Positions 18,779-63,645 of a DNA stretch of 64,000 nucleotides are shown here, piece by piece. The notes below the pieces were generated by a model. It was given only the letters and a program-made list of their open reading frames with translations, had not been told where the DNA came from and did no database searches. Origin of the DNA: Octopus sinensis. Lineage: Eukaryota. Where the stretch lies: assembly GCF_006345805.1 (NCBI RefSeq), contig NC_043004.1, positions 83,328,001 to 83,392,000 of the forward strand, written 5' to 3'. Every line of letters begins with the position of its first letter. The stretch's first letter is position 1. Position numbers and translations under genes: made by a program.

Positions 18779-18882
18779 GGGTGCAGTATAATATACGAAA
18801 CAACTAAAAGATAACGATAAAAATATTACTAATCAAACGTGTGTATATCACTTGTATATGCATTGTCTGTTTTCTTTTTCAG

Positions 18883-24660: not shown

Positions 24661-24804
24661 CGGATATTTCAAACTCATGAAGCATTAACAAATCACAGAA
24701 CTGTTCAAATTTTAATTATATAACCTCTTGAAACTTTAAACAGCAATTTATTCAATAATATTTGTTTTGCAAGATTTTTGATGTGAAATCGCGTGTTGAA
24801 ACAG

Positions 24805-41739: not shown

Positions 41740-41802
41740 CTAAGTTGTTTCCTTCTTGGTTTGTAAAACGACGATGGCGTAAGTCAACATGATTCCCAGA
41801 AT
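41740..41802 (-). CDS. GRL-C exon 4 (ILGIMLTYAIVVLQTKKETT-stop; TM7b)
   Basis: Acceptor cattttactttattctAG, TAG stop. Contains the canonical GR/OR/GRL signature TYhhhhhQ (TYAIVVLQ). Confidence 0.9.
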   Translation of the reverse strand: MLGIMLTYAIVVLQTKKETT

Positions 41803-41900
41803 CTAGAATAAAGTAAAATGTTTATCAGAATTTTCTCGTTGCATGTGAACACCTCACTACCACACACAGGCACGTGTGTGTCTATCTATCTATCTATCTA

Positions 41901-43088
41901 AAAGGAGGGCTGGGCATGCCGTGGTTGATGATGCGCAGACACGCGCTGAGACTGCGACATCTCTGGCTCTATGTAGACGACGGTGAACAGGTGTGGTCGC
42001 CGTTTGTGAGGCACGCTTTCCCGCAGCTCGTCTCCATGACCGAACTGCAGTCGTGGATCAAAAAGAGGCCGAGGAAGGGCGAATGGCACCGCGAGTGTCG
42101 CGTTGCTCTCAAGCAACTCTGCCGTCCTGGGTCGACCTTAAGTGACTTCAACACAACCAAAGCATTCTATAGGGGTTTAGTGGAGGGGAGGTACGACGAC
42201 GAGCTCGGGGCGAACCTGGACGTCGACGAGGAGTACCTGACCCGCCTGTTCGGGACGACTTTCGGGCCAGGGCCCATGACAACTTCCAGAGATCCCTGGC
42301 CTGGCAGTGCTACCGAGAAGCGCTACCCGTTCGGGATAAGCTCTACAGACACGGCTCGAGAAACACGGGGCCGACCTGCCCGAGATGCGGTCAGAGCGAC
42401 GAAACCGTTCTGCACGCACTCGTTCAGTGTCCAACAATTTCCGACCTGTGGGCTTATGTCGAACAACTGCTGTCACGTGTGGGACGAGTCGGTTTATCAG
42501 CTGAGTCTATCGTCAATCTTGTCACGCCTCCTTCCTTCAAACGGGAAGGAAGAGCTATTTTCATCATCCTTGTGGCTATGGCGAAAGAATGTATCTGGTG
42601 GACGCGTCTGAAAGGATTGGAGACAAACACTTTCCTCTCTGGTCAATCTCTCATCAACTTCTTCAAGTACCACTTGAAAGGAAAGTGAGAGTAGAGAGGC
42701 AAGTTTTGTCTAGCGAATGTTTTAAAAAAAGATGGGTGAATGTAGCAAGAATGGCACGTATGAATGACGAAGCCACCTTGAGCAATGTCCTATGAACCCA
42801 GAAATCGAAAACAGAGAGTTGCTTATTTGCAAAAAGAAAAAAAAAAAAAAGAAATATAAAACGTGACTTCATTGACCGAGGTTACCGTGGTCTTTTCCGC
42901 AGGCTTTTCTTTCCACGGGTAAACCTCACCTGTCCTCCCCTTTACACTTCATATTGACATTTCTGTGATAACGATCCCTATTGATCATTTTTTCCTCTCC
43001 CCCCTTTTTTTTTTTTTTTTTTTTTAACCCCACTTATTTTTGTCCTCTTTCTCTCCTTTTACGATCCCTTTTGATCGAACCTCCCCCT

Positions 43089-43122
<34 letters not shown>

Positions 43123-43193
43123 CCTTCAAAAGAAAAGCTCTACCTTGTAATTTGTTCTATCTGTGTGCAGCCCTGTGTGGCTAATAAAGAAAC
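41901..43193 (+). mobile_element. 5'-truncated Tx1/L1-type LINE (ORF2 C-terminus with CCHC knuckle) inserted in (CTAT)n, in GRL-C intron 3
   Basis: GLGMPWL...LAWQCYREALPVRDKL...TCPRCGQSDETVLHALVQCP across a frameshift. 3' end aataaagaaac followed by (CTAT)n. (CTAT)n also at the 5' side. Confidence 0.88.
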
Positions 43194-43196
43194 ATA

Positions 43197-43260
<64 letters not shown>

Positions 43261-43474
43261 TTATCTATCTATACACACCACACACAGAGACACACACACA
43301 AACACACACACACATATGGTGGTGTTAAAAAGATCCTGGCAATAAGGGTATCGCACAAAAACACAAAAAGCTGCCTGATTCTGAAATCGAAAGCATTGTC
43401 TCATGAGTGATACGTCTTCAAGCAATGTAAAGATACCCCACCACACACAAACACATATATGAACATATACACAC

Positions 43475-43518
<44 letters not shown>

Positions 43519-43999
43519 CTATTTATCTATCTATATCTATACATATAAATTTGACATGGGCGATTCCTTCTTGTGTATATATATACTCATCATAGATATA
43601 GGGTAAAGAATTATTAATGTGATAATCAATAAATTTTACCAAGTAGTCTCAGTAGTCTGGAAAAAAAAGACATTATCGGTAAAAACGTTTTCAAAAAGTA
43701 TTTTTTTATATTATAGAAAAAGCAGCCAAAGACATCTAATTCTTTTAACTACAAATACAACTCCACAGACAACAATATTTGTAACTCACATAGGCAAAAA
43801 GAAGAAAAAATAATGAAATCAAACAGTCTACGAAAAATTATGTACGCGTTTCCTGATTAGAGTTAGAAGTATTTACTTCCTTCATCAGCATATATTTCGA
43901 GAATTATAAATTTGAAATTTATAATTCTCAGTCAAAGTCTTGTGAGTGAATTTGGTAGACGGAAACTGAAAGAAGCCCGTCTTATACGTACATCCATAC

Positions 44000-44064
<65 letters not shown>

Positions 44065-44092
44065 TATTTATATATACGTATGTATATATATT

Positions 44093-44119
<27 letters not shown>

Positions 44120-44134
<15 letters not shown>

Positions 44135-44633
44135 TGTAGTTGTGTGAGTGTCTGTCTCCTACGATTTAGATTCCTAACTCCTCCCACATTTTGCGGTGCA
44201 GTTTAACCAAATTCGGGTATCTTATAGTCGTGATTAATATCGAGCCCGTCTGGCTATTAGCGCGCGTCTACGATGAGTCTACGATTTTAAAAATAATTTA
44301 ACATAATTTTTTATTCCATTTTAATGCATAATTTTTGTGTGTCGATGGCGGCGGAGTTGGCGTCCACGCTCAAACACCTGCACCTGTGTTTGCTTCTCCC
44401 CCTTCTTCCCTCCCTCGTGAAGCTGTGGGGAGGGAGTTTAAGGAAATCAGCGTCGTAATGCGTTGTCAAGGAGACCAGCGTTCTTTTAGAACAACGACTT
44501 CATGGCTTGAAGACACCAAAACAGAAATGGCTAAGAAAGCCCGAATTGGCATCTATAAGGGAAGTAACTCTCTAAAAATGCTTATATAGTTATTTCCCTT
44601 ACAAACCCGAGCAACGCCGGGCGATACTGCTAG
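44120..44633 (+). mobile_element. Non-autonomous Helitron
   Basis: Same 5' module as 35978 and the same 3' hairpin plus CTAG|T, but a different internal segment. Confidence 0.85.
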
Positions 44634-44714
44634 TATATATATATATATATATATATTTTGATTTTGATTTTTCCAGTTTCAGCTAATGAGCTGTGGCCAT
44701 GCTGGGGCACCGCC

Positions 44715-44802
<88 letters not shown>

Positions 44803-45179
44803 TAGATATAGATATAGACATAGATATATATCTCTGTGTGTGTATGTATTTGCTATTTGTGTCTGCGTTTCACCCCACCACCATCGCCTGATAACCGATG
44901 TTGGTGTGTATATTCGTCATCATCAACTAGCAGTTCGGCAAAAAAGACCGATAGAATAAGTACTTGGCTTACAAAGAATAAATCCTGGGATCGATTTGTT
45001 CGACTAAAGGTGGTGCTCCAGCATGGCTGCAGTCAGATGACTGACATAAGTAAGAGAATAAAAGAAAATGCATGCATGTATGTATCTAAGCACATGTATA
45101 TATTTACGTATTTGTTTGTGTTTTATATCTTAACCGTTGGTTTAAGAGGTATTGTATATAAATTTAAGCTTACACCTAC

Positions 45180-45269
45180 CTCGACAAATAACATAGGACT
45201 GATTACAGCAATACCACCAATACTTATCCCAATAGTGCCAGAGTTTATTCGATTAAGGACCAAATTGAT
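45180..45269 (-). CDS. GRL-C exon 3 (90 nt, INLVLNRINSGTIGISIGGIAVISPMLFVE)
   Basis: Acceptor tttttcttacAG and donor GTAGGT, phase 0/0. LVLNR and GISIGG are shared with GRL-B exon 3. Lies inside ORF 45123..45308. Confidence 0.9.
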
Positions 45270-45780
45270 CTGTAAGAAAAATTCTTTTCGTGAGTTTGAA
45301 GAATGCATATGAATTAATTTAGCAAACGGAAAAATAGGATGGCACTAGTTTAAGAGACGGAGATTCCTTTTTCTTGAAATTCAACATTTTAATGAGAGTA
45401 GATACTCCAAAAGCGAGTGGGTCGACTAGAAGTGAATTTTCGAGTGAAAATCACTGAAAAGTTATGGATAACAATTCGAAGACGTGAAGAATATTTTTAC
45501 AAAACTCCCAGTGTATAATATATTAGAATAATATTTCTTAAGCACTATATATATATATGTATATATAAATTAGAGAAAAAAACACTATTATGTAATTCAA
45601 ACAATGATAGGCGTAAATCACAGCATATAGAAAAAATAAAACACATGATAAAACATTTATCTAGATCACGATAAAGTACATCATAATAAATAAACAGTAT
45701 ATAATTAGTATATAATTTGATTTAATACTAAATTAAATTTTACCCTGTAAGTTTGGATTTATACTCCCTATTAATATTAT

Positions 45781-45827
<47 letters not shown>

Positions 45828-45892
45828 GTGTATATATATATATATATATGTGTGTGTGTGGGGGTGTGTATAATAATATGTGTGTGTATAAT

Positions 45893-45944
<52 letters not shown>

Positions 45945-45946
<2 letters not shown>

Positions 45947-46430
45947 CAAAAAGGTCCCGGACTATTTCTATAGCGCGCCAACAGAAGGCAGCACACTGTT
46001 GCGTGCACATTGATAGCTAGCAGTGACCTTCGTGAGGAAGTGCGCCGAGTGACACCGCTAAGTTTACTTCGCAAGTTGTGAAATTTGTGTTTTCTTGTTC
46101 GTGTGTATGCCTTAGTCTATGATTTTGTCAGGGACAGGAACAGTGAGCCGATGTGAAATTTTGCGTTAAAATAAGGACGTCACCTACGGAGACATTGAGC
46201 ATGTTTTGGCAAGCTTCAGGCAAGGACGCAATGGGTCATATGCAATGTTTCTAGTGGCACGGGCGCTTCAAGAATTGAACGGTTCTGGAAGACGATGAGC
46301 GATCTGGAATACATGCCAAGATCGTCAGCCTCGGAAATGTGGCTTTGTTCATCGCGAATTCGTCCTCCGAAGCCAGACTTTCGATCGGAATCTCTGCTGT
46401 GACTTTTTGAAGCGTTTGAAGGAAATATAA
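45945..46430 (+). mobile_element. mariner transposase N-terminal relic
   Basis: VKFCVKIRTSPTETLSMF...WHGRFKN...LEDDERSG resembles the mariner HTH region. Confidence 0.7.
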
Positions 46431-46479
46431 TATTATATAAGCTATTTAACAATTTTATATACATATATATATATAAAAT

Positions 46480-46512
<33 letters not shown>

Positions 46513-46568
46513 TGAGAGAGAGAGGGATGGAGAGAGAGTGATGGAGAGAGAGGGAGACTGATAGATAA

Positions 46569-46647
<79 letters not shown>

Positions 46648-46717
46648 TTATATAGCAAAAGTGCGTGGTAAATGGAATTTAGAAACATTGTCGAAGGAAT
46701 TTAGAAAGATTGCTTAC

Positions 46718-46786
46718 CTTTGATGCAATTTCAATACTATATTCAGGGACGTTTATGTTATAAATTCTGTCGCGTATTTTAGAAAT
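46718..46786 (-). CDS. GRL-C exon 2 (69 nt, ISKIRDRIYNINVPEYSIEIASK)
   Basis: Minus-strand acceptor tttgttttacAG and donor GTAAGC, phase 0/0. Same length as the paralogous exons, with the shared I-x2-I-R-x2-I-Y-x-I pattern. Confidence 0.85.
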
Positions 46787-47389
46787 CTGTAAAACAAATT
46801 CAAGGCTGAGAAGATATGCATTAATTCATCGACTTCAACTTACAAGATGTATTTAATGAGATAAAGGCTTTTGGTAATGCATCCAGTTGCAGATTGCTCT
46901 TAAATGTTTGTTGAAGATTGTATAAATTCAAGTCTGTTAGTCGAAAATATTATGATAGTGGCGCACAGCATGTTAATGGCCATTTAGTTACGTGACTCTA
47001 ATTTTCGAGTTGGTTAATTATTTCAGTGAATTAGTAGATACCGCAACATAGCTATGGACCATAAAATGTTTGGACTAATATTACTCAACTTGTCTCTTAG
47101 AGATTAGTCCGTCTAATAGGCTATAAGGATTGTATTCTTTAATTTTGATATTTATTTAACCATCTCTTTTATCAGAGCGCTGAAAACATAACTAAATCAA
47201 AATCAGTTGTTAAGCGGCGGAGGGACAAATATTGAGATATGCACACATACACCCACGTATAAGACGGGCTTCCACACGATATCCACTTTCCTGATACATT
47301 GGGCATTAGTTTTCTTGATATAGTGCGGTGAAAAGCTTCGAACAATTACAATAAAATATTTTTGTCAACTCTCTCTTTTACTCTTTTAC

Positions 47390-47522
47390 TCTTTTACTTG
47401 ACTACGGCCTTGCTGGAGCATCGCCTTTAGTCAAAGACCTCGACCCCAGGACTTATTCGTTCTAAACCTAGTACTTATACTATCGGTTCTGTTTTGCCGA
47501 ACAGCAAAGTACACACACATAC

Positions 47523-47567
<45 letters not shown>

Positions 47568-47725
47568 ACGACAGGCTTCTTTCAGTTTCTGTCTACCAAA
47601 TCCACTCACAAGGCTTTGGTCGGTCCGAGGTCATAGTAGAAGACACTTGCTCAAGGTGTCACGCAGTGGGACTGAACCCGGAACCATGTGGTTCGTAAGC
47701 AAGATACTTACCACACCGCCACTCC
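47390..47725 (-). mobile_element. CORE-type SINE copy
   Basis: Reverse complement of the family at 41259 (tttcagtttctgtctaccaaatccactcacaaggctttggtcgg...). Confidence 0.75.
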
Positions 47726-48336
47726 TGCAATTATTTTCTATCGATGTAAGTATATATAGATGCACTTTTTAGTATGACTCGGAGGCATGCCCTAAAATTT
47801 AGCCAATTAATTCAAATGAGTATTTACTAGCGAGCAGACGTAATGAGAAAACTTAGACCTTTGATTCTCAGCCCAACAGCACAACCAAATACGAGGTATT
47901 GTTTATAAGATATGTACGTTTCAGTAATATATAATAATTAATAAAATAATTTTTAATTATGAGAGTATCGAGTCACTTTTAAGGTGGTGAATAGTCATAT
48001 TCAGATTCTAGGGTTTTATGTATATTTACATCTCCCCGACTAATTAACAATAAGAATTGATTATCTAGCTTGCATTATCTCACTAGTAACTATCTTAAGT
48101 CATTGAACCGCAACAAGAGATATTTCATAGAAAATCTCACTTGTGATTTTTTAAAATTGTTTTCTTCATATATTCTATGTAAGACTGAGAAATATATAAA
48201 AAAAGTAACGGACACAATAACAGCACACGAGCAGAATTACACATGGTGGTCTCACTGCTAGGTTTCTGTCACGCAGTTTAAGGTGAAATTTGTGATGTGC
48301 GTTCATATATATGTATAAATATATACATACACACAA

Positions 48337-48390
<54 letters not shown>

Positions 48391-48431
48391 TATATATACA
48401 TACACACACGCACACACACACCCACAACACA

Positions 48432-48477
<46 letters not shown>

Positions 48478-48526
48478 ATATATATATTATATTATATATA
48501 TATATGTATGTATGTAATGTAATGTA

Positions 48527-48624
48527 TAAATTTAAAATGAGGGTGAGAAATTAGATATTATTTAATTAACATCGATTTCACACCAGTGGTCTAGCGTAAA
48601 AAACTGAAGGTTCAGTAAAATTGC

Positions 48625-48677
<53 letters not shown>

Positions 48678-49225
48678 GGGAAACCACTATGTGGACACCC
48701 ATATGCTACAAATAGATCCGCTACGCTCTCACCACTAAGAAATGTTCTCAAGAAAAATTTACCAAAACAACCAAAACGTAATCGAGTTAGACAAAAGAAA
48801 ATGTAATAAAAATATGGATTATTCGTGTACATGTTTCACTATCAACAAATTACATAATCTTACTTACGTAATTGTACGTACAACATCGGTACGACCGTCC
48901 AAGGTGAACATAATTTGTAGGACTGCATACTAGGACATCAACACAAAGTCAGACTTGCAAAAAAGACCTATCCATTACTCTCGTGACTACAATTTCAAAC
49001 GTACTCGTTTTGACGCGTTAAATTACCGGAAAAACTGTTGCTGCTGATAATACTTTACTACAGCGGCCTTTGCCGGTTAGAGAACTTATTACTTTAATTT
49101 TAAATTTAAAATGAGGTGAGAAATTAGATATTGATTTAATTAACATTGATTTCACACCAGTGGTCTAGCATAAAAAAAAACTGAAGGTTTAGTAAAATTG
49201 TATTATATATATATATTATATATAT

Positions 49226-49267
<42 letters not shown>

Positions 49268-49509
49268 TGTGTGTGTATGAGTGTGTGTATATCTTTGTGT
49301 GTCTTTGTTTGTGCCCCCAACCGCGCTTGACAACCGGTGTTGCTGTGTTTACGTCTCCGTAACTTAGCGGTTCGGCAAAAAAGACCGATAAAATAAGTAC
49401 AAAGTTTACAAAGAATAAGTCCTGCTGTCGATTTGGCAGACTAAAGGCGGCACTACAGCATGGCCACAGTCAAATGACTGAAACAAGTACAAGAGTAACA
49501 GAGTAAAGA

Positions 49510-49545
<36 letters not shown>

Positions 49546-49830
49546 TGTGTGTGTGTATTAGCGCTATATATATAATTTTAATAATGAGAGAGATACATTG
49601 AATATTAATTTAATTAATATTAATTTAAAATCAGTAGCCTAGCATATCTAAAAAATCTGAAAATTCAGAAAATTTCAATACATGTGTCTATTTAGGGATA
49701 AACCACTAGGTGAATAACCAATTCGCTAGAAGAAGATCACATACGATCTAACTACAAAAAGAAAAATGTTCTCCAGAGAAAATTCAGCGAACACTAGAAC
49801 ATAAGCGGGCAAGATAGATGAAAATTATAT
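48527..49830. repeat. Dispersed direct repeats (about 110-bp module at 48527, 49098 and, degenerate, 49575) in GRL-C intron 1
   Basis: aaatttaaaatgag.gtgagaaattagatatt...cacaccagtggtctagc is repeated. Two copies are followed by a homologous aaaccacta segment. Confidence 0.6.
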
Positions 49831-49954
49831 AAAAATCAAGAATTCTTGATACATATTATTTTTGCAGAGAGAGGGTGAGTAAAAAGAGAAAAAGTACGAA
49901 AACATTTGAAGCTCAGTGAGAGTAAAATATATGAAATTATGTTTTAATACATAC

Positions 49955-50980
49955 CAAAAGATGCACTTTGATTCCACTTTGGAAAATGTGCACTAAATTT
50001 AAACCATTAAATATTGACAGAATCATTATATATTCATATTCAGGCACGTCGGTTACACGAATTATTGCTCCATAAATAAGTGAACAAATACATATTTCAC
50101 TAAATATTATATTAAATAAAGTTTGTGTTTGCGTAAATATATTTGTTAATTTGAGCAATGAACACAGTTCTTGAAAATGGTCAAAGAGATGTACTAAAGG
50201 TACACTCTGCTTTTTAGGCATCATATTGTCCCTAGGTCCATACTCTTCAAAATGCTTTATTAATTTGTTCCCTTCTCTCAAAATAATTCTTTGCATCACA
50301 TTTATAGCAGATATGTGAATATAAAAAGGAAAAACGTGAATCATATGAATCCAAAACCTCAGTAAAAGTATTAGAATGGCATATTTAGTGTCAGATGATA
50401 AAGGATATAGATATATTGAAAGTAAAATATTATTCTTATTTTTCACAGGTAGAAATATTGTCATTAGAATGCTAAAGCATACAAATAAAATCATACATAT
50501 ATACTGTTTGCATGTGCATTGTTTATAAATCTTGTCTATGGATTTGAGATTGCATTCTAAAAATTTAAAGTCATTAAGATTTTTTATGATACTAGTACAT
50601 ATATCCACTTTCCACATTCTATCAATTATAATTAAAAACGAAACAAGTGTTTCTCCGATTATTAAATAATAAAACATTACGGCGGATACGGGATGATTGT
50701 TATGAACCACAGGTAAAAAAGTGACAATACGAATAGTATCCAAGGTAAACAATACGATTACGAATAAGCGGAAAAAGTAAAATAAGCGTTTCTTCATACT
50801 GGAAGAGCTCCAAATTCTTGTATTCATTTTCATATCTAGAAGAGCCATACACTTGCGAATTCTCTCCATGTATTTCGATAAACGAGTATCACCCAATTTC
50901 TTCCATGTAGTATTAATCGGTTCATGCATTGGATTTGGGCTCTTCTCCATTAAAGATTTAATTGTAACTATTTCCGACAT
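49955..50980 (-). CDS. GRL-C exon 1 (342 codons, TM1-TM6) of a gustatory-receptor-like 7TM ion channel
   Basis: ORF 49937..50980, with an in-frame stop upstream of the ATG. Six hydrophobic segments. FDHFQELCSLLKLTN and GIKVH are homologous to GRL-A/B. Donor TTG|GTATGT (phase 0) at the same position as in the paralogs. Confidence 0.9.
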
Positions 50981-51088
50981 ATTGATAATGGGTAACTAAA
51001 AATGTTGTACTTTCATATGCTACCTGTTATTTGAAAATGGAAAATGCTCCTGCAAAGTCCGTGTCTCTGTGTAGAAGTATATATGTAC

Positions 51089-51133
<45 letters not shown>

Positions 51134-51911
51134 ATATATGTATATCGAATATGAGATCGATATTAGTCTACACCATTCATGTAAAAATATTGACTACCCT
51201 AATTCTTTTTCCATCATATTATTTTAAAATTGGTTCTGTCCGAGTAAATTCTATTGTTATACATTTACCTATATGCTTAGCACATAATCCAGATGTCGAT
51301 ATTTTCTATTAATTTTATGTATACATATAATTATCTATTTATTTATTTACTAATACTTACTTCTTTTAATTGCTTCTCAAATATACATTATTGAGCTGCT
51401 ATTTGCATGGCTTTCATTTAAAAAAAATTGCTGCTTTATTGGTGTAATCCAATATAATCTTCGGATATGGTTATAGACATCCATATATCACAAAATATAT
51501 TGTTTGCTTGTCTCCGTCATGCGATTAGAATATAAGTTTTATGATCACCAGTTTCAAATGAATCAAATATATGAGATCCCCGTCGTGAAATATTAATGGA
51601 AATCATCCAGATTAGAGGTGAAAAGTTTTTTTTTTTTATTTATTTTGTAAGGCGGGGACACTTAATAGCTTTATTGAGCTATATCTATTCCGTATTGTAG
51701 AGACGTCAGTTGCAGACCGTCCCCGATGTTAAATCAATGATAAACGTATGGCAGTGCTGAAATTGGAATATTCAGGAATAAAATATAAAAAAATTAAATA
51801 ATTAAAGAATAAATTGTTGCATGGTTGTCTAGATACATAGATCTAAACATATATTAAGATGAAGACGGGTACATACACATTTGCATATACATACATAGAT
51901 ACATACATACA

Positions 51912-51943
<32 letters not shown>

Positions 51944-51994
51944 ATAAATATATATATTATATATATATATATATTATATATATATACATACACG

Positions 51995-52300
51995 TGGAGG
52001 TACGATGGCCCAGCAGTTAGGGCAGTGGACTCGCGGTTGTAGGATCCCGGTTTCGATTCCCAGACCGGACGTTGTGAGTGTTTATTGAGCGGAAACAGAA
52101 AAAACCTAAAGCTCCACGATCTCCAGCAGGGATTGGTGGCGATCCCTGTTCTACTCTGCTGCCACAACCTTCTCTCACCCTTTATTCTGTTGGCCTGCCC
52201 TCTTAGCCAGCGGGGTGGCGTCATTTGAAGGCTAAAACAAGCTTTGTGACCAGCGATGCGTAGCAACATCTGGTAGCCTGGTCGGTCATGGTTATCACGA
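51995..52300 (+). mobile_element. tRNA-derived SINE (head shared with 21890, different tail)
   Basis: ggactcgcggttgtaggatcccggtttcgattcccagaccggacgttgtgagtgtttattgagcg. Confidence 0.7.
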
Positions 52301-52596
52301 TGGTCACATACATACACACATAATTGTGTATATATATATATAAATATATATATATATGTGTATATATATATATCTCTTATCATAAAAGGCAGATTTTATC
52401 TGCCTCCCTTTGTCTCTTATAGAAATCTACAATATAGGATTTCTTCAATTACAATTTACCTAGCATTTTTAAGAGTAGAATGCATCGGGTCGTGCCAGGT
52501 CCAGTTTTTAAAATTACAACCCCAATTAAGCAAAATTTAGAGAAAACTCACATTGTGGTGTGTGAGTCAAGTGCTTTTCTTAGTGTGGGCTATAGC

Positions 52597-52638
<42 letters not shown>

Positions 52639-53424
52639 AGCGATCTGGTTCACTCACGCTATCACTAATTTCTACGACTTTCTCTTTGCAAGTTTGCAAC
52701 GATTAAAGTGAAACTACTTCGATAAAACGAGAGAAGTGTACCTTAAACCACTACTAAAAAAAAAAAACACAGCAAACAGAAAATAAATACATAACGATTT
52801 ACTCCTCACACAATTTCTTCAATTAGAGTTTACCCATGATTTTTCAAAGTACTTCCATTGGGTGATGCCATACAAAATTTCTTTCAATTTTACCCCCAAT
52901 TAAGACAAAATTCGAGAAAACTCAATATTTTAACATTTCACTCCGAAAGCATTGATGTACATGTGTGCGTGCGTGAGTGTGTGTGTGTCATTCCTCACAC
53001 ACACGCATACACATACATATATGACAGTGACAAACAAACGTTTCAAACAACTACATACAAACACGTGTGTGTTTGTTATTAGTAAAAAGGTGCCAAAACA
53101 CAACTCACTTCTCATTCCAACACATTTGCAAAGACACACGGACGGTCGAATTGCTATAACAATACAGAAGAGGTAAATTGGTTTTTATTTTACTTTCTGT
53201 CGTTAAATTTTGGTAGTATTAATTGGCGAGCCGAGCTTGCAGTATGAAACAATGTTTATGTATAAACGGACGACACTTATATATAGTTATTAATAAATGT
53301 ATGCATCCGTTTAAAAGAAAAACCAAAAAATATTTTATTCTTTATAAATGTTGTGTTCAAAATAACATTTTCTTTTAAGAATGTGTATATAACAAAGTAT
53401 GTGTATATAACTACGTGGCTTATA

Positions 53425-53680
53425 TCTTTATATATAAAAGTGAAGTTGTGTCTCTGTTTCCTACGATTTAGATTCCTAACTACTCCCACATTTTGCGGTG
53501 CAGTGTAATCAAAACCGGGTATCTTATAGTCGTGATTCATATCGAGCCCTTCTGGGTATTAGCGTGCGTCTACGATGAGTCTACGATTAAAAAAAAAATT
53601 ACCATCATATTTTTCCATTTTGATGCATTTTTTCGCTATTATATAAGGGAAGTAACTCTCTAAAAATATCTACGATAAGC
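53425..53680 (+). mobile_element. Non-autonomous Helitron 5' module (3' end missing)
   Basis: A|TCtttatatataaaag... cgatttagattcctaactactcccacattttgcggtgcag... as in 35978. Confidence 0.75.
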
Positions 53681-53740
53681 TAACGTGTGTGTGTGTGCGT
53701 GTGTGTGAGTGTGTGTATGTGCGTGTGCGTGTGTGTGAGG

Positions 53741-53776
<36 letters not shown>

Positions 53777-53794
53777 GTGTGAGTTTGTGACAGG

Positions 53795-54476
53795 AAAGTT
53801 TTTTAGGACGAATATAAGACCTAAAGTATATCCAAGTAGCAGAAAGATCGCCCAAAAGTGTATATAGATATTTAAATGTATTTATATATTCATCTATACA
53901 CAGATGTATGTATAATGTGTGTGTATATATTTCCATAGAGGTAACCTTTCACTCCATACAAAGTTTTTTAGGACGAATATAAGATCTAAAGTATATACAA
54001 GTAGCAGAAAGATCGCCCAAAAGTGTATATAGATATTTAAATGTATTTATATATTCATCTATACACAGATGTATGTATAATGTGTGTGTATATATTTCCA
54101 TAGACGTAACCATTCACTCCGCACAAAGTTTTTTAGGACGAAAATAAGATCTAAAGTTATCTCTAAGTAGCACAAGGATCGCCCAAAAGTGTATATAGAT
54201 ATATAAATGTATTTATATATTCATCTATGCACACATGTATGTATAACGTGTGTGTATATATTTCCATAGAGGTAACCATTCACTCCATACAAAGTTTTTT
54301 AGGACGAAAATAAGATCTAAAGTTATCTCTAAGAAACAGAAAGATCGCCCAAAAGTGTATATAGATATTTAAATGTATTTATATATTCATCTATACACAC
54401 ATGTATGTATAATGTGCGTGTATATATTTCCATAGAGGTAACCATTCAATCCATACAAAGTTTTTAAGACGAAAAT
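53795..54476. repeat. Tandem array of about 4.1 copies of a 165-bp unit
   Basis: The anchor a(g/a)gacgaa starts at 53805, 53970, 54135, 54301 and 54466. Confidence 0.92.
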
Positions 54477-55320
54477 ATTTAAATATAAAAGAAAGGTTGT
54501 GTGTCTGTCTACTCCGATTTAGATTCCTAACTACTCCCACATTTTGCGATGCAGTTTAACCGAAACCGGGTATCTTATAGTCGTGATTCATATCGATCCC
54601 TTCTGGATATTAGCGCGCGTCTACGACGAGTCTACGGTTTTACAAATAATTTACCACCATTTTTTCCATTTTAATGCATATTTTTTTTAATAAAGGGAAG
54701 TAACTCTCAAACTTCACAGCAATATGCGTGCTCATATGCGACGTAATATCACATCAGCAGCATTTCCTCACACCCTCCTTGCACTTGGCGAAGGCAAAAT
54801 ACCAGGGGATGAAAATGGTAATATTGCCATCGATTCCATTTGTACCATTGTTAAGACGCCTTCTGATTTCAGAGATGCAGTGTTCCCAGATCTACAAGCT
54901 AATTATCAGAATATGGATTGGATTGGCAAAAAGGCTATACTGGCCCCGAGGAATAAAACTGTTCACCATATTAATGATGAAATGCTAAAACTCATTCCTG
55001 GGGAAGTCTATGTATATCAGTCTATCGATACAACTCCTGACCCAGAGGACGTCATCAACTATCCAATAGAGGTACTCAATTCCTTTGAGCACCCCGGACT
55101 ACCACCACACTTTCTCAAACTTAAAGTTGGTGCCCCTATAATGCTCATCAGAAATTTGGTTCCCCCAAAACAATGCAATGGCACACGTTTGATCGTTAAG
55201 TCCTTATCTCCCACCGTAAACTTATATCAATATTTGCCTGAATAATCATCATAATTCAGTGCAATCATTAACAGTACTTTCAAGCAATTCAGACCCGAGC
55301 AACGCCGGGCAATTCTGCTA

Positions 55321-55321
<1 letters not shown>
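54477..55321 (+). mobile_element. Helitron deletion derivative carrying a PIF1 helicase fragment (ORF 54724..55245)
   Basis: Family 5' module, then KKAILAPRNKTV...LKLKVGAPIMLIRNLVPPKQCNGTRL, then hairpin CCCGAGCAACGCCGGG and CTAG|T. Confidence 0.88.
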
Positions 55322-55357
<36 letters not shown>

Positions 55358-55449
55358 AACATGACAGAAGTAAACAGACATCCCATATGTTTATTCTAAC
55401 TTATAAATGTTTATGTTTTTTATTAATTAACATATTTATGTTTCAGGTT

Positions 55450-56210
55450 CTATACGATACTTTTTAATCAATTCATGTACGAAAGAAGCCTTGGAATTGT
55501 CTGAGATTTAAAGAGGCTGTATTGTGGGTCATTGTGAAGGTAGATATATTGCGTAAAATCGCAGGAAAGCTTGGGATCCCGCTTTCTACTGTTAATAGAG
55601 TGATTGTACAATTCACCAGAAGGAGAAACGTGTCCACATCACCTCACCCAGATCAAGCAGGGCCCTTCGACAGGACCCTCTGACATAGCAGAAAAAGTTG
55701 ATGTCAGTCCAAGTACAGCTCACTGGTATCTCCACGAAATTGGTTACTGTGATGGAGCAGCAAGAATGAAGCCACTTCTTGGACCAGACAATATCAAGCG
55801 GAGAAAAGATTGGGCCAGTGAGATGGTGGAGAGGTCACTAGCATTATGGGATACTGTAATATTATCTGATGAGACTAGATTTACTGTATTTCCTGACAAT
55901 GGTCGAGTGTGGCTCTGGAGACTTTGTGATCAATAGTTTGATGTAAAAAGATTGTAGCCAACAATGAGAAACGGTAGCTGCTCTGTGATGGCCTGGGGAA
56001 CAATTTAGAGCAATGGTTGATCAGAGCTGGTGGAGTGTGAAGGAAACAGAAACTCAGATAAATATGTGTTCATATTGCAGAAAGAACTCCTTCTAGTCTT
56101 CTCCATTCGTGAAATGATTTAAGAAACCTCTTTATTTATGGAAAATAGGGCTCCTCGTTACACGTCTAAAATGAACCAAGATTGGTTGGATGTGAATGGC
56201 ATGTGAATGT
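55450..56210 (+). mobile_element. Tc1-like transposase relic
   Basis: KPLLGPDNIKRRKDWA...WDTVILSDETRF...GRVW (first catalytic D), followed by degenerate downstream motifs. Confidence 0.8.
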
Positions 56211-56265
56211 ATGTATAATACCGTACTAAATTCTGGTGCGCTGGTGCCTCAACTTAAGTACCATA

Positions 56266-56301
<36 letters not shown>

Positions 56302-56449
56302 TAATACTAAGCAATAAAGGGTTTAGCAACGAATTGCCTTACCACATACCGAATTTAGAAATAGCAGTCAAAGAGTTATAGCTATTTCTTCTACTAAAAA
56401 GGGAGATCTCAGTAAAAACAGCAATTATTATATATATATATATATAACG

Positions 56450-57170
56450 CAATAGAGAACAATAAAACATCATGACAGAAAGACGATACAAAGGCGAACA
56501 GGATATACAACAAATAAAGAGAGAGGAACTTAAACAAGGGTCGGGTCACTCGTTGCCTTCTCTCCTCAGTCAATTTTCTAGATTTCCTTACATTTTCGGG
56601 GAGTTACACTTGAGACTGTTCAAATCTGGATGCTCCCAAAATATCTATGCTAAGAACATTAGACTTTTGTGAGATAACAGAATGTTTACGACAACAAAGA
56701 CAAAAAACGGAGAACATGTTACACAGTTACAAATACAAACAAGAAAACAACAGCAGGTGTCTTTCGACTAATAAAGATGAATCAGATTGAGCTAGCGTGT
56801 ATAGAGTGAAAGCCTTGAGCCAGGAACATAGAAGATGGACATAAGAGATGTTGGCAGTCGACAGTCAAGCCAAGAAAGAAAGATCATGCTTGGCAGAACA
56901 CCGGACATGTAGAAGGAGAAGAGAGGGGTAGAGAACAGAAGGATTGAAGGATTAGGGGAAGAACGAGAAAGAGAGAGAAAAGGGACAAAGCGAACGGTAC
57001 AAGGGCGATAAAAGAGGAGGAAAAGTAGGAATTAATGAAAGGGAGGGCCAAGAAATATGAGAGAAGGGGAGCGAGAAAAAGAAAAGAGGAAACAAGGAAG
57101 AAAGTATGAGGAGGACTAAAACACAGAGTAAAAGAATCGTATAAAATCTAGATATATACTTAATTACAAG
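56450..57170 (-). repeat. Unclassified interspersed repeat related to 15630-16440
   Basis: Shared internal motif and purine-rich tract. Confidence 0.4.
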
Positions 57171-57209
57171 GTAAACAAAAGTGTACGTACGTTGCTATAG
57201 AAATATATG

Positions 57210-57269
<60 letters not shown>

Positions 57270-57814
57270 GAGCAAAACAGCCCCCGCCCAATGGATGGTG
57301 GTGAATCATATCTACTGAATAAAGAGCCATCAGTGTTTTCTTTTCATTAAAAAATAATTAAGCATGCCTTTATTTGAATAAAATTTTTGGTTTTGTGAAA
57401 CGAAGTTAGGGCAAAAAAAAAGTTCTTGAGAAACCAAATAGCTTTTCTTTCCTTCATTCCAGGTTTGAAGAAAATATCTCTTTTGCAACCTAATTTTTGG
57501 GTCTCTTAAATATATTGCATTTTGTGGCATTATTTCAAGCCAGCCGGCTTTTTTGGTGCAAATTGCACGTGCAGTTTTCTCGCATAGGCATAGAATCGAT
57601 CGCAACAGCTGATTTACTTGCACGTTCCCACGGCTTTATCGATCGAATTCTCACCTAGAATCGATTTTTGTAATTTTTCCAAGACTTCTACACGGCCTGA
57701 TACCGTCGGTATCTATATCTCAAATTTGAGCGCAATCGGATGGAGGATGCCCGATATCCTTGAAGACACACACACAGACAGACAGAACGGATTTTAAATA
57801 ATATATATATATAT

Positions 57815-57975
57815 ATTCGACGGGATACTTTCAGTTTCCGTCTACCAAATCCACTGTCAAGGCTTCGGTCGGCCTGCAGCTATAGTAGAAGACATTAGCC
57901 CAAGGTGCCACGCAGTGGGATTGAACCCAGAAACATGTGGTAGGGAATGAAGCTTCTTATCACACACTCACTACT
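57815..57975 (-). mobile_element. CORE-type SINE 5' part
   Basis: tttcagtttccgtctaccaaatccact...gcccaaggtgccacgcagtgggattgaaccc. Confidence 0.7.
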
Positions 57976-58044
57976 GCGCCCATACACATATGCTTATCTA
58001 TATGCACACAAATGCATATGCGAATGTAATTGTATATGTGTATA

Positions 58045-58115
<71 letters not shown>

Positions 58116-58645
58116 TATAAACCTGAAATGCGAAAAGTTTGTTTGTTTGTCTGGTTTTGGCATTGAGAACGGGTTAAAGGCCACTAGATCCCGTCGGATT
58201 GACTCCAAAATCTACAGGGACATGTAAAATGAGGTGAGGATGCCAGTGGGCTAGGTTAGAAATCCCTATCTTAAAACGTGCCGTTGCTAGGGCCAAAAAC
58301 GCACTTTGTCAAGTCTACTCTCATTCTTTTATGTATCTGCCCTTCCTCCGTCACTCACTTTCTTTCCTCCCTTCCCATTACATTCTATATATAACGTCGT
58401 TTAATAGCGTCTAACCCCCCTTCACTTTCTCTTTATAACGTCGTCAAACAGCGTTCTATATCTTCGCCTCACCGCCTTCGACAGCGCTTTCATACTCTCT
58501 CACTCTCTGCGTCTGTCTGCATTCATAGACATAATTATCATCACCACCACACCCACACAATCATGAGAACAAATATTATGAATCAGATATGCATTGGGTT
58601 AATTTATATATATGTGTGTGTGTGTGTGTGTGTTCTATATATAAA

Positions 58646-59019
58646 CTAGCAGTATCGCCCGGCGTTGCTCTGGTTTGTAAGGGAAATAACTATAAAGCAT
58701 TTTTAGAGAGTTATAGCCAAAAAATAGCAAAAAAATGGAAAAAAATTATGGTAAATTTTTTTTTTAGTTAAAAAAGGTGGAGTTGCGTCCCCTAGACAGT
58801 TTGCGGTTTGTGTTTCTGATTCTCGACCCCATGTCGAATTTATCGATTTTTTTCAGAACTGGGGGAAATTTTCGCTACGTTAGTTTTGAATTATGACATT
58901 GGGCTATGTGTGTGTCAAGTTTCATCAGAATCAGTTGAAAGCCGTGGTCAGGGTGAGGGTACAAGCAAACAGACACACAGAAACACGCACAGACAAACTG
59001 CCGTTTATATAGAGAGAGA
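58646..59019 (-). mobile_element. Non-autonomous Helitron
   Basis: On the minus strand: A|TC start and CCAGAGCAACGCCGGG...CTAG|T end. 3' module shared with 35978 and 44120 but a different 5' module. Confidence 0.8.
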
Positions 59020-59233
59020 TATGTATATTAAACTTTTTAATACTTTTTGACAGTTATATATATTTAAAAAAATTATACATATAAATTAATAATTTTAATT
59101 TTAAATTTAAATAATTTAAATTTTTCAATTTTATATTTTATATATTTTGTATATTATATTTTTATTTTTATGTTTTCGTTTATGTTTTTCGCTGTTTTAT
59201 TTGCCTAATAGTGGTTTTATCTCTAATTTAATT

Positions 59234-59281
<48 letters not shown>

Positions 59282-59283
59282 GC

Positions 59284-59325
<42 letters not shown>

Positions 59326-60144
59326 TGCATTTTGTGTCGGTTGTGCTGAAAATATGTACACCTATGTCAAAAGTGCTTGCGAGTTTGCATGGCAACTGGT
59401 TTTTTCCTGAAATGAAAGGCGTGACCTCTAGGACAAAATTCCTCATCTTATAAAATGTGACCCGAGTAGACCCGAATGAAATCGGGTCATATTAACCAAA
59501 ATGTGAAAAGAGGTCTAAATGGGGCTTGAGGGGATTAAAATTTACAGGAGCGGGTGTTTAGGAATTCACTGTTACATGAAGCTAAAAGATTTGCGCCAGC
59601 CTTTAAATCGTCAATGTGTTGCCGTCCATGATGAAGAAGTTTTGAATGCTTGCCATGTTGAGTCTACTGTCGTGAGAAAGAATCACTTCAAAGCTTGGTT
59701 TTTAGGAATTTTCTTTTACATCAAGTTCAAAATTTTACGCCAGCCGTTAAACTGCCACTATGTTACTGTCCGTCGTTAAGAAATGCCAGCCATGGTGACT
59801 CTAATATCCTCAGATTCTATCCTTTCAAACTTTGGTTTCCAATATTTTTTTTATTTTTATTCAGATCGCAAGTTCGTCTGTCCCTTTTAAATGTTAGTGT
59901 TTTGCTTTCTGCCTTGAAACAGACCTTTCCGTTGTCACTGCCTGATATTTATGATTGATCTTTCAAACTACTTTCTTTCTCAACTTACTCAAGATCTTTT
60001 GTTGTTTATACATGGGAGAGAGATAGATAGAGAAAGATAGAGGGTAAGAGAAAGCGAGGGAGAGTCCGAGAGAAAGGAAGAGTAAGAGAGTGGGAAACGG
60101 AGAGAGAAAGGAGAGAGAAATAAAGAGGGAGAATCATCATCATC

Positions 60145-60450
60145 ATCGTTTAACGTCCGTTTTCCGTGCTAGCACGGGTTGGGCGGTTTGACCGGGGTCT
60201 GGGAAGCCAGGAGGCTGCACCAGGCTCCAGTCTGACCTGGCAGTGTTTCTACAGGTGGATGCCCTTCCTAACGCCAACCACTCCGTGATTGTAGTGGGTA
60301 CTTTTTCGTGCCACCGGCACAGGTGCCACGGGGAAAAGGGCCCTGGCAGCGGCCACGATCGGTTGGGGCTTTTTACGTGCCACCGGCACAGAAGCCAGTC
60401 AAGGCGGCGCTGCCATCGGCCACGTTCGGATGGTGCTTTTTACGTGCCGA
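60145..60450 (+). mobile_element. Interspersed repeat (SINE or RTE-tail-like) with short gtgccaccggcac repeats
   Basis: catcatcatcgtttaacgtccg...ggatgcccttcctaacgccaacc is a motif typical of retroelement tails. Confidence 0.5.
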
Positions 60451-60514
60451 AAGGATGCAACAGAAAATAACAACCACACTCTTACCCACGCGTAGAGCGC
60501 GTCACCTTAAGTTA

Positions 60515-60575
<61 letters not shown>

Positions 60576-61241
60576 TCTTTGTGTGTGTTTGTCTCTGTCA
60601 ATTTGCTTATCTCTAGATATCCTCAACAACAGTTCTAATGTTACAATCTTTCATATTTTTGCCTTTTGTTTTCTTTATATATATATAATGAACAATATAT
60701 AGTCTGTTGACTAGTGTGTCTACACCCGAGGCCACGGTGGTAAAAAAATTCTAAATAATATTTTATTACTCTGAAATTTATTAATGATAATTCTGTTGGC
60801 TAATTTAGACAGAAATTCATCATTATATCTATTTGCTGCCGGAAACAAAACTGCGTTTGGGTGGTGGATTTGAAAAATTATAACATGTAACCACGTGGCA
60901 TATTCTGTATTGCCTCGGTCTTATATGCTAATATTTGGCTTTCCTGCTAATGAGAGCTTCGCGTAGCAAAATACTTTATTTGCTGAAGAGAGCTTGAAAC
61001 CATGGTCCAGGAAATATATGGTAAATGGTTTTATTTTTCATTCCCTTTCAACATTACCCCTATTTGTGGTTTGGATTTTAACTACTCCTTCTAGCGGTTT
61101 AGATGTCCGATTATGGCCATCTCTTATGTACTTAAATGTACACTGTATATATGACGAATATATAGTATTTTGACTAGTTTTTCTACAAGCTAGACCAGGG
61201 TGGTAAAAAATGTCTACATAATATTTTACTACCCTGAGATT

Positions 61242-61313
<72 letters not shown>

Positions 61314-61344
61314 GAGGAACACAAATATAACACACACACATACA

Positions 61345-63120
61345 TATAAATTTAGCTGTTTCGACCAAAGATTGGTCAAGGCTATGTCTAACTTATAAGT
61401 ACCCCCTGATAGGATTATCTGAATTATTTTAAATCAAGTATCTTGGTCCATTCAAGTAGTGAGTTGTATCCAGGTATAAATAGCTTATCTGGTTTTCCTT
61501 GAAGTAATTTTTCCAGACTGTTTAAAAGTGATAAGGATCCTTTTTCCTCTTTGATCAGTTTCGGGACAATGTTAACTAGGTCAGGGCCTGTTGAGGAAAA
61601 GAAATTGTGTCGCAGTGTACTTATATGTTGTGATCCTGAATTGGGCAGGGTACGTATGGCCCGTGGTTCCATCCGTGGATGAACCTTGAAGTTAATGTTC
61701 AGGTCGTTTGTGCAATACTCGCAGTATATTCTCCACATCGTGCAAATGATATGCCGCTCGCGGCGACGCTAGAGGGAGTAGAGTTTCAATGTTTTAAGGC
61801 GATCCCTGTAATCGAGATCAGTCATGCTCTTAATTCGTTTGATGATTCAATTTTCGAGAGATTTTGTTTTATATTGGGAGACCACAGGGGGTACGGTATT
61901 CGAGGTGTAGCCGTACAAAGAGGAGAAAATTGGAATGATGACACCTTGTTCTCTGGACCGGAAAGTTCTTAAGATCTAGGAGCTCATCCTGCACCTATAT
62001 CCACCGACCTTATTGTTGATTTGGGCACTCCAACTGTGATTATTATCAAGAATTACCCCTAGGTCTCTGATATTATTAAATGCTGTGAGCGGTTCCCTTC
62101 AAGGAAGAGAGTATGGCTGTTTTAGTATAGTCTTTCTTCCAATATGCATCAGCTCAAATTTTCCCTCGTTTGGTTGCACTTTGTTTTTGTCTGCCCATTG
62201 ACTCACCGCATATCGATCGGATCGGATTTGAGTTCGGTCTTCTTCTTCATTGATGATTTGCTGGAGCTTAGTTTCATCAGCAAATATTTTCACTTTGCAG
62301 TGTTTTACGAAGCTGGAAATGTCGTTTATGTAGATTATAAAGAGGAGCGTGTCCAAGACAGTCCCCTGAGGGACACCACTGGTGACTTTTTCTGGGCTTG
62401 ATTGGACTTCATCAACCACAACGTGTTGTGTTCTATTCACCAGGAAATACTCAATCCAGTGTAGAAGTATTCCATGGATTCCAACATGTGCCAATTTTGA
62501 GAGTAAGATATTATAGTCAACGCTGTCGAACGCTTTACTGAAGTCAAATTCGAACCTGTTCCCAAGGCTTTAAGTATATCTTCAATGTAGTATTAGAGTT
62601 GTGTAAGACAGTCCCTGCCGCAGCGAAAGCCATGCTTATTTGCATTTAGGAGTTTGTGAATCTCCATGAAGCCAGCTATCCTTGATCTTACCACTCTTTC
62701 AAACAATTTAATGATGTGGGAGGTAAGTGAGATTGCATAATAGCTGACTGCGTGGGATCTGTTTCCCTGTTTTAAAACCAGGATGAGAGACTGGGATAGG
62801 AGTTGTTTCGGTATATAATCTGAATCTAAGGAATTTTTCAAGAGCTTGGTCAGAGAGACTGCAAGTTGTTGTCTACATTCCTTCAGGAGATTAGCAGGGA
62901 ATCTATCAGGGCCTAGAGCAGAATATTTAACCTTATTTATTGCTGCAATGATGTCTGAGATTTTATGTTGGGAATCAACTTCATTCGCTTCTCTTACGTC
63001 AATATTAGTGAAATCACTAAAGAGAGAGCAATATTGTTTCTGCAGTATCTTGAGAACTTTTTGAACTAAAGAGTAGGAAGCCATGATGGTCCTGTGGAGG
63101 ACAGTTGTTCTCAGCCACCT
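61345..63120 (-). mobile_element. CR1/L2-group LINE RT relic
   Basis: GPDRFPANLLKEC...ISLTSHIIKLFERVV...HGFRCGRDCLTQL, FDFSKAFDSVD and SGVPQGTVL..LLFIIYINDI...IFADETK, with frameshifts. Confidence 0.9.
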
Positions 63121-63645
63121 GGACTACTGCCCCCAACTATGGTCACCATACAGTGTAAAATTAACAGCAGACATTGAAGCAATTTTGTGAAGCTTCACAA
63201 AAAAAAACATCTCATTGCAACAGCTAAGACTCTGCTCTCTGGAGCGAATGCAGGAGAGATATGCAGTAATAAACATCTGGAAGACCCTGGAAGGCATTGT
63301 GTCAAAGTTTGGCATTGAAAGCTACACAAATGCCAGGACGGGTCCACATTGCACAGTGCCAAATATCCCAGCAATGCCATCGTACTTCAGGACTGGTTAA
63401 TGCAACAGACTGGGTTTTACGGGCCCATAGCTTTTTAATATTTTTCAAAGAGACTGAAGGACAAAGTGAATATAGTGGTTTTCAAATTAAAACAGGATTT
63501 CATCCTGTCGAGAGTCCCAGATGAACCTACCTAGCAGCAGAAGGCGCAAATGAGGGCAGCGGTATCAAACTCACATATTAGATGATGTTCTCACTAATAA
63601 CAGTGTAGTAAAACGGTGGTGCCCCAGCATGGTCATAGCTTTCAG
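63121..63645 (+). mobile_element. CR1-group LINE 3' fragment
   Basis: LQQLRLCSLERMQERYAVINIWKTLEG followed by a 3' tail ggtggtgccccagcatggtcatagc. Confidence 0.7.

Follow-up and report, generated by a model that had tools for sequence, protein, structure and literature searches.

Arthropod gustatory receptors (GRs) and the gustatory-receptor-like proteins (GRLs) of animals have a single primary-sequence hallmark, (T/S)Yhhhhh(Q/K/E)(F/L/M) (h, hydrophobic), in the C-terminal half of the seventh transmembrane helix (TM7), which is diagnostic rather than definitive, as divergent members are known (PMC7746228). Their canonical genes have a second exon of 69-72 bp and a third of 90 bp (PMC13388675), and arrays of alternative first exons have been documented in arthropod GR and odorant receptor (OR) loci (PMC2204066, PMC6175461). 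At Drosophila Gr39a and Gr28b and at cockroach Gr60a-m, tandem long first exons for six helices, each provided with an ATG and a GT donor, are followed by one set of three short exons that supply TM7 and the C terminus. GRLs have been documented in the molluscs Aplysia, Lottia and Crassostrea; in the searchable literature we found no GR-family gene from octopus or other cephalopods, although an earlier mention is possible. Octopus chemosensation is currently accounted for by nicotinic-receptor-like CRs and G-protein-coupled receptors (GPCRs). Here we describe GRL-C, a four-exon gene in a 64,000-nucleotide stretch of the Octopus sinensis genome (assembly GCF_006345805.1, contig NC_043004.1, positions 83,328,001 to 83,392,000; hereafter the window). 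We consider it likely that GRL-C is an intact protein-coding gene for a GR-type channel, with constant exons shared with two more first exons and a putative role in chemoreception. Positions without a prefix are those of the window, and those prefixed C8 are positions on the contig.

Gene structure

The four minus-strand exons of GRL-C (50980-49955, 46786-46718, 45269-45180 and 41802-41740) join into 1248 nt comprising 415 codons and a TAG, with zero internal stops. An earlier note on this DNA had proposed this join, and our translation of each exon agrees with it exactly. The features of the locus are as follows (all on the minus strand; a slash marks a splice junction):

49955..50980: exon 1, 1026 bp, 342 codons, from the ATG at 50978-50980 to the donor TTG/gtatgt; its product is the presumed cytoplasmic N terminus plus helices S1-S6 (translation, splice sites, hydropathy, AlphaFold2 model, fold matches)
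46787..49954: intron 1, 3168 nt, phase 0, GT..AG, microsatellite-rich
46718..46786: exon 2, 69 bp, 23 codons, part of intracellular loop 3 (acceptor ttgttttacag/, donor AAG/gtaagc)
45270..46717: intron 2, 1448 nt, phase 0
45180..45269: exon 3, 90 bp, 30 codons, containing GISIGG; end of loop 3 and start of TM7
41803..45179: intron 3, 3377 nt, phase 0
41740..41802: exon 4, 60 nt of coding sequence plus TAG; C-terminal half of TM7 and a tail of 5 residues; identical in Octopus vulgaris
41758..41784: TM7 motif codons T402-Y403-AIVVL-Q409-T410 (regular-expression scan)
50981..64000: putative part of a long intron for transcripts from two upstream first exons, with no copies of exon 2, 3 or 4

All three introns are GT..AG and phase 0, with a pyrimidine-rich tract ahead of every AG. 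An in-frame stop lies five codons ahead of the ATG at 50980, which is the first Met, and the stop-to-stop frame (49937-50995) spans 352 codons, a length expected by chance with a probability of ~5e-12 from base composition (35% G+C, at which ~7% of random codons are stops). Paralogous copies of exon 2 are likewise 69 bp, while exon 3, the most conserved portion across the octopus GRL family, has clear copies, also 90 bp long, at other places in the cluster. The small exons are not chance matches, because an annotated O. vulgaris protein uses them, they are intact in that species and exon 3 has paralogues.

That protein, CAI9727297.1 (P0007; 170 aa), was retrieved by exhaustive phmmer, and its C-terminal 74 residues are exons 2-3-4 joined as predicted. 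It leaves exon 1 after residue 96 through a weak internal donor, CCC/GTATCC, skipping 246 open codons. The O. vulgaris annotation combines transcripts, protein alignments and ab initio predictions into an EVidenceModeler consensus, with Iso-Seq and RNA-seq as input (PMC10700109). The model backs the 3' junctions but is itself probably truncated, since the full 415-codon frame is intact at its locus (L021, OX597821.1:106245077-106273906; gene at 10001-18830), which has four exons of the same lengths, 6/6 splice sites, start and stop. Introns 2 and 3 are packed with di- and tetranucleotide microsatellites and differ in length between the two species (intron 3, 3377 nt here versus 1471 nt in O. 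vulgaris; intron 2, 1448 nt versus 2610 nt). Contigs with orthologous first exons from Logan runs SRR11869384, -90, -91 and -94 (P0005, P0006 and P0010) read past the donor into intron 1, with near-identical ends between runs (for example, open reading frames at 205-1272 of 1455, 203-1270 of 1453 and 191-1258 of 1441), and could represent genomic reads or unspliced transcripts.

Membrane topology and the TM7 motif

GRL-C resembles animal GRLs and arthropod GRs (Pfam 7tm_7) in its ~415 residues, seven helices, N terminus inside, long intracellular loops and TY-h5-Q in TM7, and its length falls within the ~350-500 residues given for GR/GRL proteins (criterion ii, PMC7746228). Hydropathy revealed seven hydrophobic segments, six as clear Kyte-Doolittle peaks and one weaker. 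The N terminus comprises 73 residues, 15 of them K/R, and is presumably cytoplasmic by the positive-inside rule; the loops measure 8/41/21/71/~8/~50 residues, those between helices 2-3, 4-5 and 6-7 being long and the others short, and the tail is put at 7 residues by hydropathy.

A regular-expression scan of the window returned a sole T-Y-h5-Q match directly preceding a short tail and stop, which is TM7 of GRL-C. The motif had been called canonical, TYAIVVLQ, and these first eight positions do fit; the ninth residue is Thr, not F/L/M. As had also been proposed, it is a better motif than that of the family member A in the same window (TITAFVTQN). Other terminal exons of the octopus family read TYSIVAYQT, TFTVYCLQR and TITAFVTQN, such that the last position is Thr, Arg or Asn where GRLs and GRs have a conserved Phe, Leu or Met. 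In BmGr9, the motif Thr forms a hydrophilic ring, the Tyr touches a lipid that penetrates the pore, the central hydrophobic residue serves as the inner gate, the Gln swings into the open pore and the Phe is the outer hydrophobic plug (PMC11100771). GRL-C keeps the T, Y, middle Val and Q of BmGr9, and Thr replaces the Phe. The plug position is polar throughout the octopus family, which suggests, by analogy with BmGr9, that resting-state gating probably differs from that of insect GRs.

Family assignment

Four independent lines of evidence (exon structure, motif, profiles and fold) place GRL-C within the insect chemoreceptor (7TMIC) superfamily, in its gustatory-receptor-like branch, and the GRL assignment made in the earlier note holds. 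The exon sizes of 1026/69/90/63 bp with phase-0 introns match the published GR/GRL gene structure exactly (PMC13388675, PMC9998090). Scanned with exon 1 alone, three paralogous first exons scored 32.0, 30.9 and 30.1 bits against Pfam 7tm_6 (PF02949), above the curated cut-off of 25.8 bits. These matches are long and colinear, covering approximately positions 6-243 of the 313 in the profile, and end where exons 2-4 would continue; the remaining ~70 profile positions correspond to the 73 residues that those exons would add. Two paralogues also matched 7tm_7 (PF08395) over positions 28-290 (E = 0.002-0.005), and this similarity to the Pfam GR model is sub-threshold only. GRL-C was described as having the clearest family assignment in the window; the assignment stands, but its own sequence has no Pfam match, and the link runs through paralogues above the cut-off, to which exon 1 matches at E = 6e-13 to 0.04, and through its orthologue P0005, for which 7tm_6 is the single match, below the cut-off (17.7 bits, E = 0.002). 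Searched against the whole genome, 7tm_7 gave only weak matches, one of them in the cluster (E = 0.3).

An AlphaFold2 model of the exon-1 product, built from 25 family sequences, has six long helices, a mean pLDDT of 81.7 and a pTM of 0.75. Foldseek against the PDB ranked insect ORs and GRs at positions 1-9 and 11-13 (probability 0.87-1.00, TM-score 0.41-0.65, best E 2.7e-3), including MhOR5, AgamOR28, AaegOR10 (TM-score 0.65), ApisOR5/Orco, DmGr43a and BmGr9, while the remaining matches had probabilities of <=0.16 and TM-scores of <0.25. The predicted GRL-C fold superposes on Gr43a, BmGr9 and insect ORs. No GPCR family was found in any Pfam scan, and the sole GPCR in the fold list had a probability of 0.06 and a TM-score of 0.15.

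Insect ORs provide both the best Pfam model for the paralogues (7tm_6) and the best structural matches for GRL-C (MhOR5, AgamOR28 and AaegOR10, TM-score 0.50-0.65). ORs are an insect-specific offshoot of GRs, and most tuning ORs have lost the TY...Q motif. Because ORs are known only from insects, and the octopus genes, unlike them, retain TY...Q together with the ancestral exon layout of GRs, we read the 7tm_6 matches as superfamily-level similarity, not OR membership. No relatives beyond octopods were found by sequence in word-indexed searches of 5.8 billion proteins, queried with one sequence and with 19- and 25-sequence profiles, or in an exhaustive phmmer search of 1.84 billion representatives. 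One protein from Fasciola hepatica (CAK6928197.1, P0008; 1364 aa) matched exon 1 at E = 2.5e-16 and was rejected as a tandem-repeat artefact arising through 12 repeated short stretches.

Alternative first exons and shared 3' exons

The closest relatives of GRL-C are two intact first exons past the window end, at C8:83396497-83397483 and C8:83400966-83401994, not the family members A or B in the window. Both are on the strand of GRL-C, at distances of 17.5 and 22 kb upstream of its exon 1, with which they share 40-42% identity. Within 24 kb of the minus strand there are accordingly three intact exon-1 copies (343, 329 and 342 codons), each with its own ATG and all ending at GTATGTAT, a donor that in the two upstream exons occupies the same codon position as in GRL-C and is identical in sequence. 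For the one farther upstream, a distant species holds an intact orthologue at 80% identity, an outcome reached in 1.5% of neutral simulations.

We searched 276 kb of the cluster, holding at least 20 first exons, for exon copies using tblastn and exon-specific hidden Markov models, which revealed four copies of exon 3 (all 90 bp; E <= 1e-16, with the next best match at E ~0.9) and four of exon 2. Across these 276 kb, no copy of exon 2, 3 or 4 was found between or after the two upstream first exons besides GRL-C's own. A private exon-3 copy should have been detected, because exon 3 of the much more distant paralogue A was recovered easily (E = 4e-6). The GRL-C locus is probably a complex locus of the Gr39a type, with three alternative first exons and common exons 2-4. 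The four-exon model put forward earlier remains intact but is probably not a stand-alone gene, representing one of three alternative first-exon isoforms.

As at Gr39a, Gr28b and Gr60a-m, the octopus first exons stand in tandem, each encoding six helices and bringing an ATG and a GT donor, the three short exons for TM7 and the C terminus form a single block, and degraded pseudo-exons are interspersed in the larger array described below. The octopus loci are spaced far more widely (introns of 22-26 kb for GRL-C, up to ~156 kb for the neighbouring array), they belong to a mollusc, not an arthropod, and their arrangement is deduced from DNA.

The segment of the window upstream of exon 1 (50981-64000) holds only transposon remnants and microsatellites. 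These include a Helitron-like Pif1 helicase 2B domain at 54694-55245 on the plus strand (E = 2.7e-15) and a reverse-transcriptase fragment at 62099-62569 on the minus strand (E = 8.6e-14). A weak exon-2/3-like match at 54796-54876 (minus strand) was discarded as the relic of a private 3' exon, as it lacks an AG acceptor and lies inside the Helitron fragment, and a 188-codon open frame at 51829-52395 consists of microsatellite and SINE-like repeat sequence.

Conservation and alternative explanations

Several observations weigh against a functional GR-type gene with shared exons. The joined GRL-C protein gave no relevant match in the Pfam scan, and searching the solved structures by sequence, with a family profile and with a Pfam-positive paralogue, yielded nothing relevant. 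The fold model covers the exon-1 product, with TM7 outside it and its packing extrapolated, and the last TM7 motif position is T410 where Phe, Leu or Met is conserved. Exon sharing was deduced from the lack of private exons in DNA, not from transcripts. The O. vulgaris annotation has only a 170-residue model, truncated through use of an internal GT donor, and the spliced full-length product is absent from the 5.8 billion proteins, which include assemblies of public sequencing runs, all relatives there running into intron 1. Between O. sinensis and O. vulgaris, which split ~2.5 million years ago (PMC10700109), GRL-C differs by 14 substitutions (11 nonsynonymous, 3 synonymous), giving a synonymous rate (dS) of 0.012, a nonsynonymous rate (dN) of 0.011 and a ratio (omega) of 0.94; values of omega <=0.2 are rejected (P = 0.009), and strong recent purifying selection is absent. 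On this short timescale, GRL-C is indistinguishable from neutral. Coding indels number 0, compared with 6.3 expected from the 5 gap events per kb of flanking and intronic DNA (P = 0.002), a coding/noncoding contrast that intronic microsatellites inflate. We dropped global intron alignments as a neutral rate because large indels inflate their mismatch (12% in intron 2).

The picture differs over deeper divergence, where our comparison rests on a simulation of neutral drift and on heterogeneity tests of the proteins rather than on deep dN/dS. The orthologue P0005, from a more distant octopod and 70% identical, is open and ungapped over all 342 exon-1 codons. When neutral drift was simulated to 70% identity (n = 2000), only 0.35% of frames stayed open, with a mean of 5.6 stops, which shows that the GRL-C frame has been maintained. 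Replacements between the two proteins are uneven (chi-square P = 0.001; windowed-variance permutation P = 0.006), with identities of 90% in TM4 and 84% in TM2 and TM5, and of 49% in extracellular loops versus 72% elsewhere (P = 0.004), a pattern that fits a receptor with a constrained core and a diversifying outward surface. Orthologues evolving neutrally or carrying disruptions had been named in the earlier note as a test of function; frames are intact in O. vulgaris and P0005, but the dN/dS of ~0.94 with O. vulgaris does not cleanly exclude neutrality.

These data bear most directly on the idea that GRL-C only looks intact and is dead or dying, being either a recent pseudogene or a first exon that is never expressed, its frame so far spared. 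Such a copy would account for the near-neutral dN/dS, the lack of a spliced product in protein databases and the truncated model returned by an O. vulgaris pipeline supplied with Iso-Seq and RNA-seq, and gene death is common in the family, B being frameshifted and ~6 first exons of the big array degraded. However, a dN/dS of ~1 drawn from 14 substitutions comes with a large error and is often seen where chemoreceptors have expanded recently, whereas an open, ungapped frame at 70% amino-acid identity is rare under neutrality, substitutions concentrate significantly in extracellular loops (conservation in TM2, TM4 and TM5 being 84-90%), and 6/6 splice sites, start and stop are kept in O. vulgaris. 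The lack of coding indels, the open distant orthologue and the non-uniform replacements argue against a dead gene, which we judge quite improbable. Even less credible, to the point of being very remote, is an octopod-specific seven-helix family unrelated to GRs, with convergent or coincidental motif, exon structure and fold. It would be in keeping with the lack of sequence-retrievable relatives outside octopods, the missing Pfam match of GRL-C and the modest Foldseek E-values (best 2.7e-3), but it leaves to coincidence the exact 69-bp and 90-bp phase-0 exons, a TY-h5-Q rightly placed in the last helix, three paralogues above the 7tm_6 cut-off with colinear 7tm_7 matches, and a fold list in which ORs and GRs are the sole credible matches; neither GPCRs nor any other family of membrane proteins compete.

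A functional GRL channel subunit could also serve some end other than external chemoreception, such as development or internal, temperature or light sensing. Precedents are Nematostella Grl1, which acts in body patterning (PMC7746228, PMC5850775), and Gr28b, which acts in light and heat sensing (PMC6175461), and contact chemosensation in octopus has already been ascribed to nicotinic-receptor-like CRs (PMC11526382). Developmental GRLs, in contrast, are usually single-copy and conserved, whereas at least 35 tandem, fast-evolving first exons with pseudogenes, arrays and fastest change in extracellular loops carry the signature of environmental chemoreceptors. We therefore regard a non-chemosensory role as doubtful and chemoreception as the most likely putative role of GRL-C.

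The surrounding gene cluster

At least 35 first exons of the family were found, all within C8:82.48-83.53 Mb. GRL-C shares 25-26% identity with A and with B-type copies, against 64% between A and the B-type copies themselves, bearing out the earlier statements that GRL-C is far more distant from A and B than they are from one another and that the cluster spans an old duplication. It is also, as had been suggested, the best candidate for a functional receptor in the window, being intact and having a better motif than A, with exon 1 of B frameshifted. The other members and blocks are:

11090-12112, 18883-18951, 20457-20546 and 24580-24663, plus strand: family member A, with the long/69/90/short phase-0 structure
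6083-7161, minus strand: exon 1 of B, in which a frame switch is needed near ...VFGSI/FIAEYLLP...
3521-3589, minus strand: exon 2 of B
4656-8479 and 9718-13601: A/B duplication blocks, corresponding to C8:83526256-83530143 (L006) and C8:83521142-83525029 (L009)
C8:82895531-83048629, minus strand: first exons of a second array, 153 kb
C8:82891484-82891552: plausible 69-bp exon 2 of the second array
C8:82889868-82889957: exon 3 of the second array
C8:82886329-82886379: terminal exon of the second array, reading LIGSIITYSIVAYQTRS followed by a stop

In A, TM7 (TITAFVTQN) has lost the Tyr and the last motif residue; an alternative exon 4 at 26098-26154 has no phase-0 acceptor, and the exon from 24580 onward was preferred. 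Exon 1 of B carries an apparent frameshift, reflecting either a pseudogene or an assembly error, and past the shift its protein is 98% identical to a copy at C8:83527756. The A/B pair belongs to a segmental duplication, inverted and ~190 kb away, the blocks of which are 97.4% identical in nucleotides and in reverse orientation.

The second array, 330 kb away (loci L024-L041), comprises at least 13 intact and ~6 degraded first exons and extends in all over C8:82886329-83048629. With a single exon 3 and a single terminal exon, it repeats the shared-exon pattern of the GRL-C locus, and three of its first exons pass the 7tm_6 cut-off.

Discussion

By analogy with solved GR and OR structures, GRL-C would assemble as four subunits surrounding a central pore, with the C-terminal half of TM7 as its lining. 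Binding of a ligand in an extracellular-facing pocket of S2-S6 would shift TM7b, opening the way for cations, with T402 forming a hydrophilic ring, V406 acting as the inner hydrophobic gate and Q409 swinging into the open pore. Replacement of the outer Phe plug by T410 would be the feature that sets the resting state apart from that of insect GRs. From the genome architecture, three alternative first exons with three constant short exons may yield three receptors that differ in their ligand-binding halves and share one pore helix.

GRL-C adds to a known kind of receptor, and what is unusual about it is the polar plug position and the alternative-first-exon architecture in a mollusc. The latter extends this GR architecture beyond arthropods and suggests that it is either ancient or has been repeatedly reinvented wherever the ancestral arrangement of one long and three short exons persists. 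Loss of the Phe plug across the family offers a natural experiment on gating in this class of channel. The family is easily missed in proteome-based surveys, because the O. vulgaris model is truncated and the protein collections searched hold no full-length spliced product.

Like the octopus CRs, the GRL cluster is a lineage-expanded, tandemly clustered set of candidate ionotropic receptors. The two are unrelated in fold and family, the CRs being Cys-loop pentamers as opposed to GR-type seven-helix tetramers, and sucker expression and ligands have been established for CRs, whereas GRL-C is known from the genome alone. We hold it as a tentative possibility that the 1-Mb cluster, on one chromosome, constitutes an undescribed, octopod-restricted repertoire of at least 35 GR-type channel variants, arranged for the most part in protocadherin-like or Gr39a-like first-exon arrays (3 plus at least 13 intact) with common pore-helix exons and a polar residue at the plug position. 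An intact, conserved GRL within a fast-evolving cluster of at least 35 members represents an additional candidate receptor class for the suckers and olfactory organ, and if this reading is correct and the genes are expressed there, they would form a second ionotropic chemoreceptor system in octopus beside the nicotinic-like CRs.

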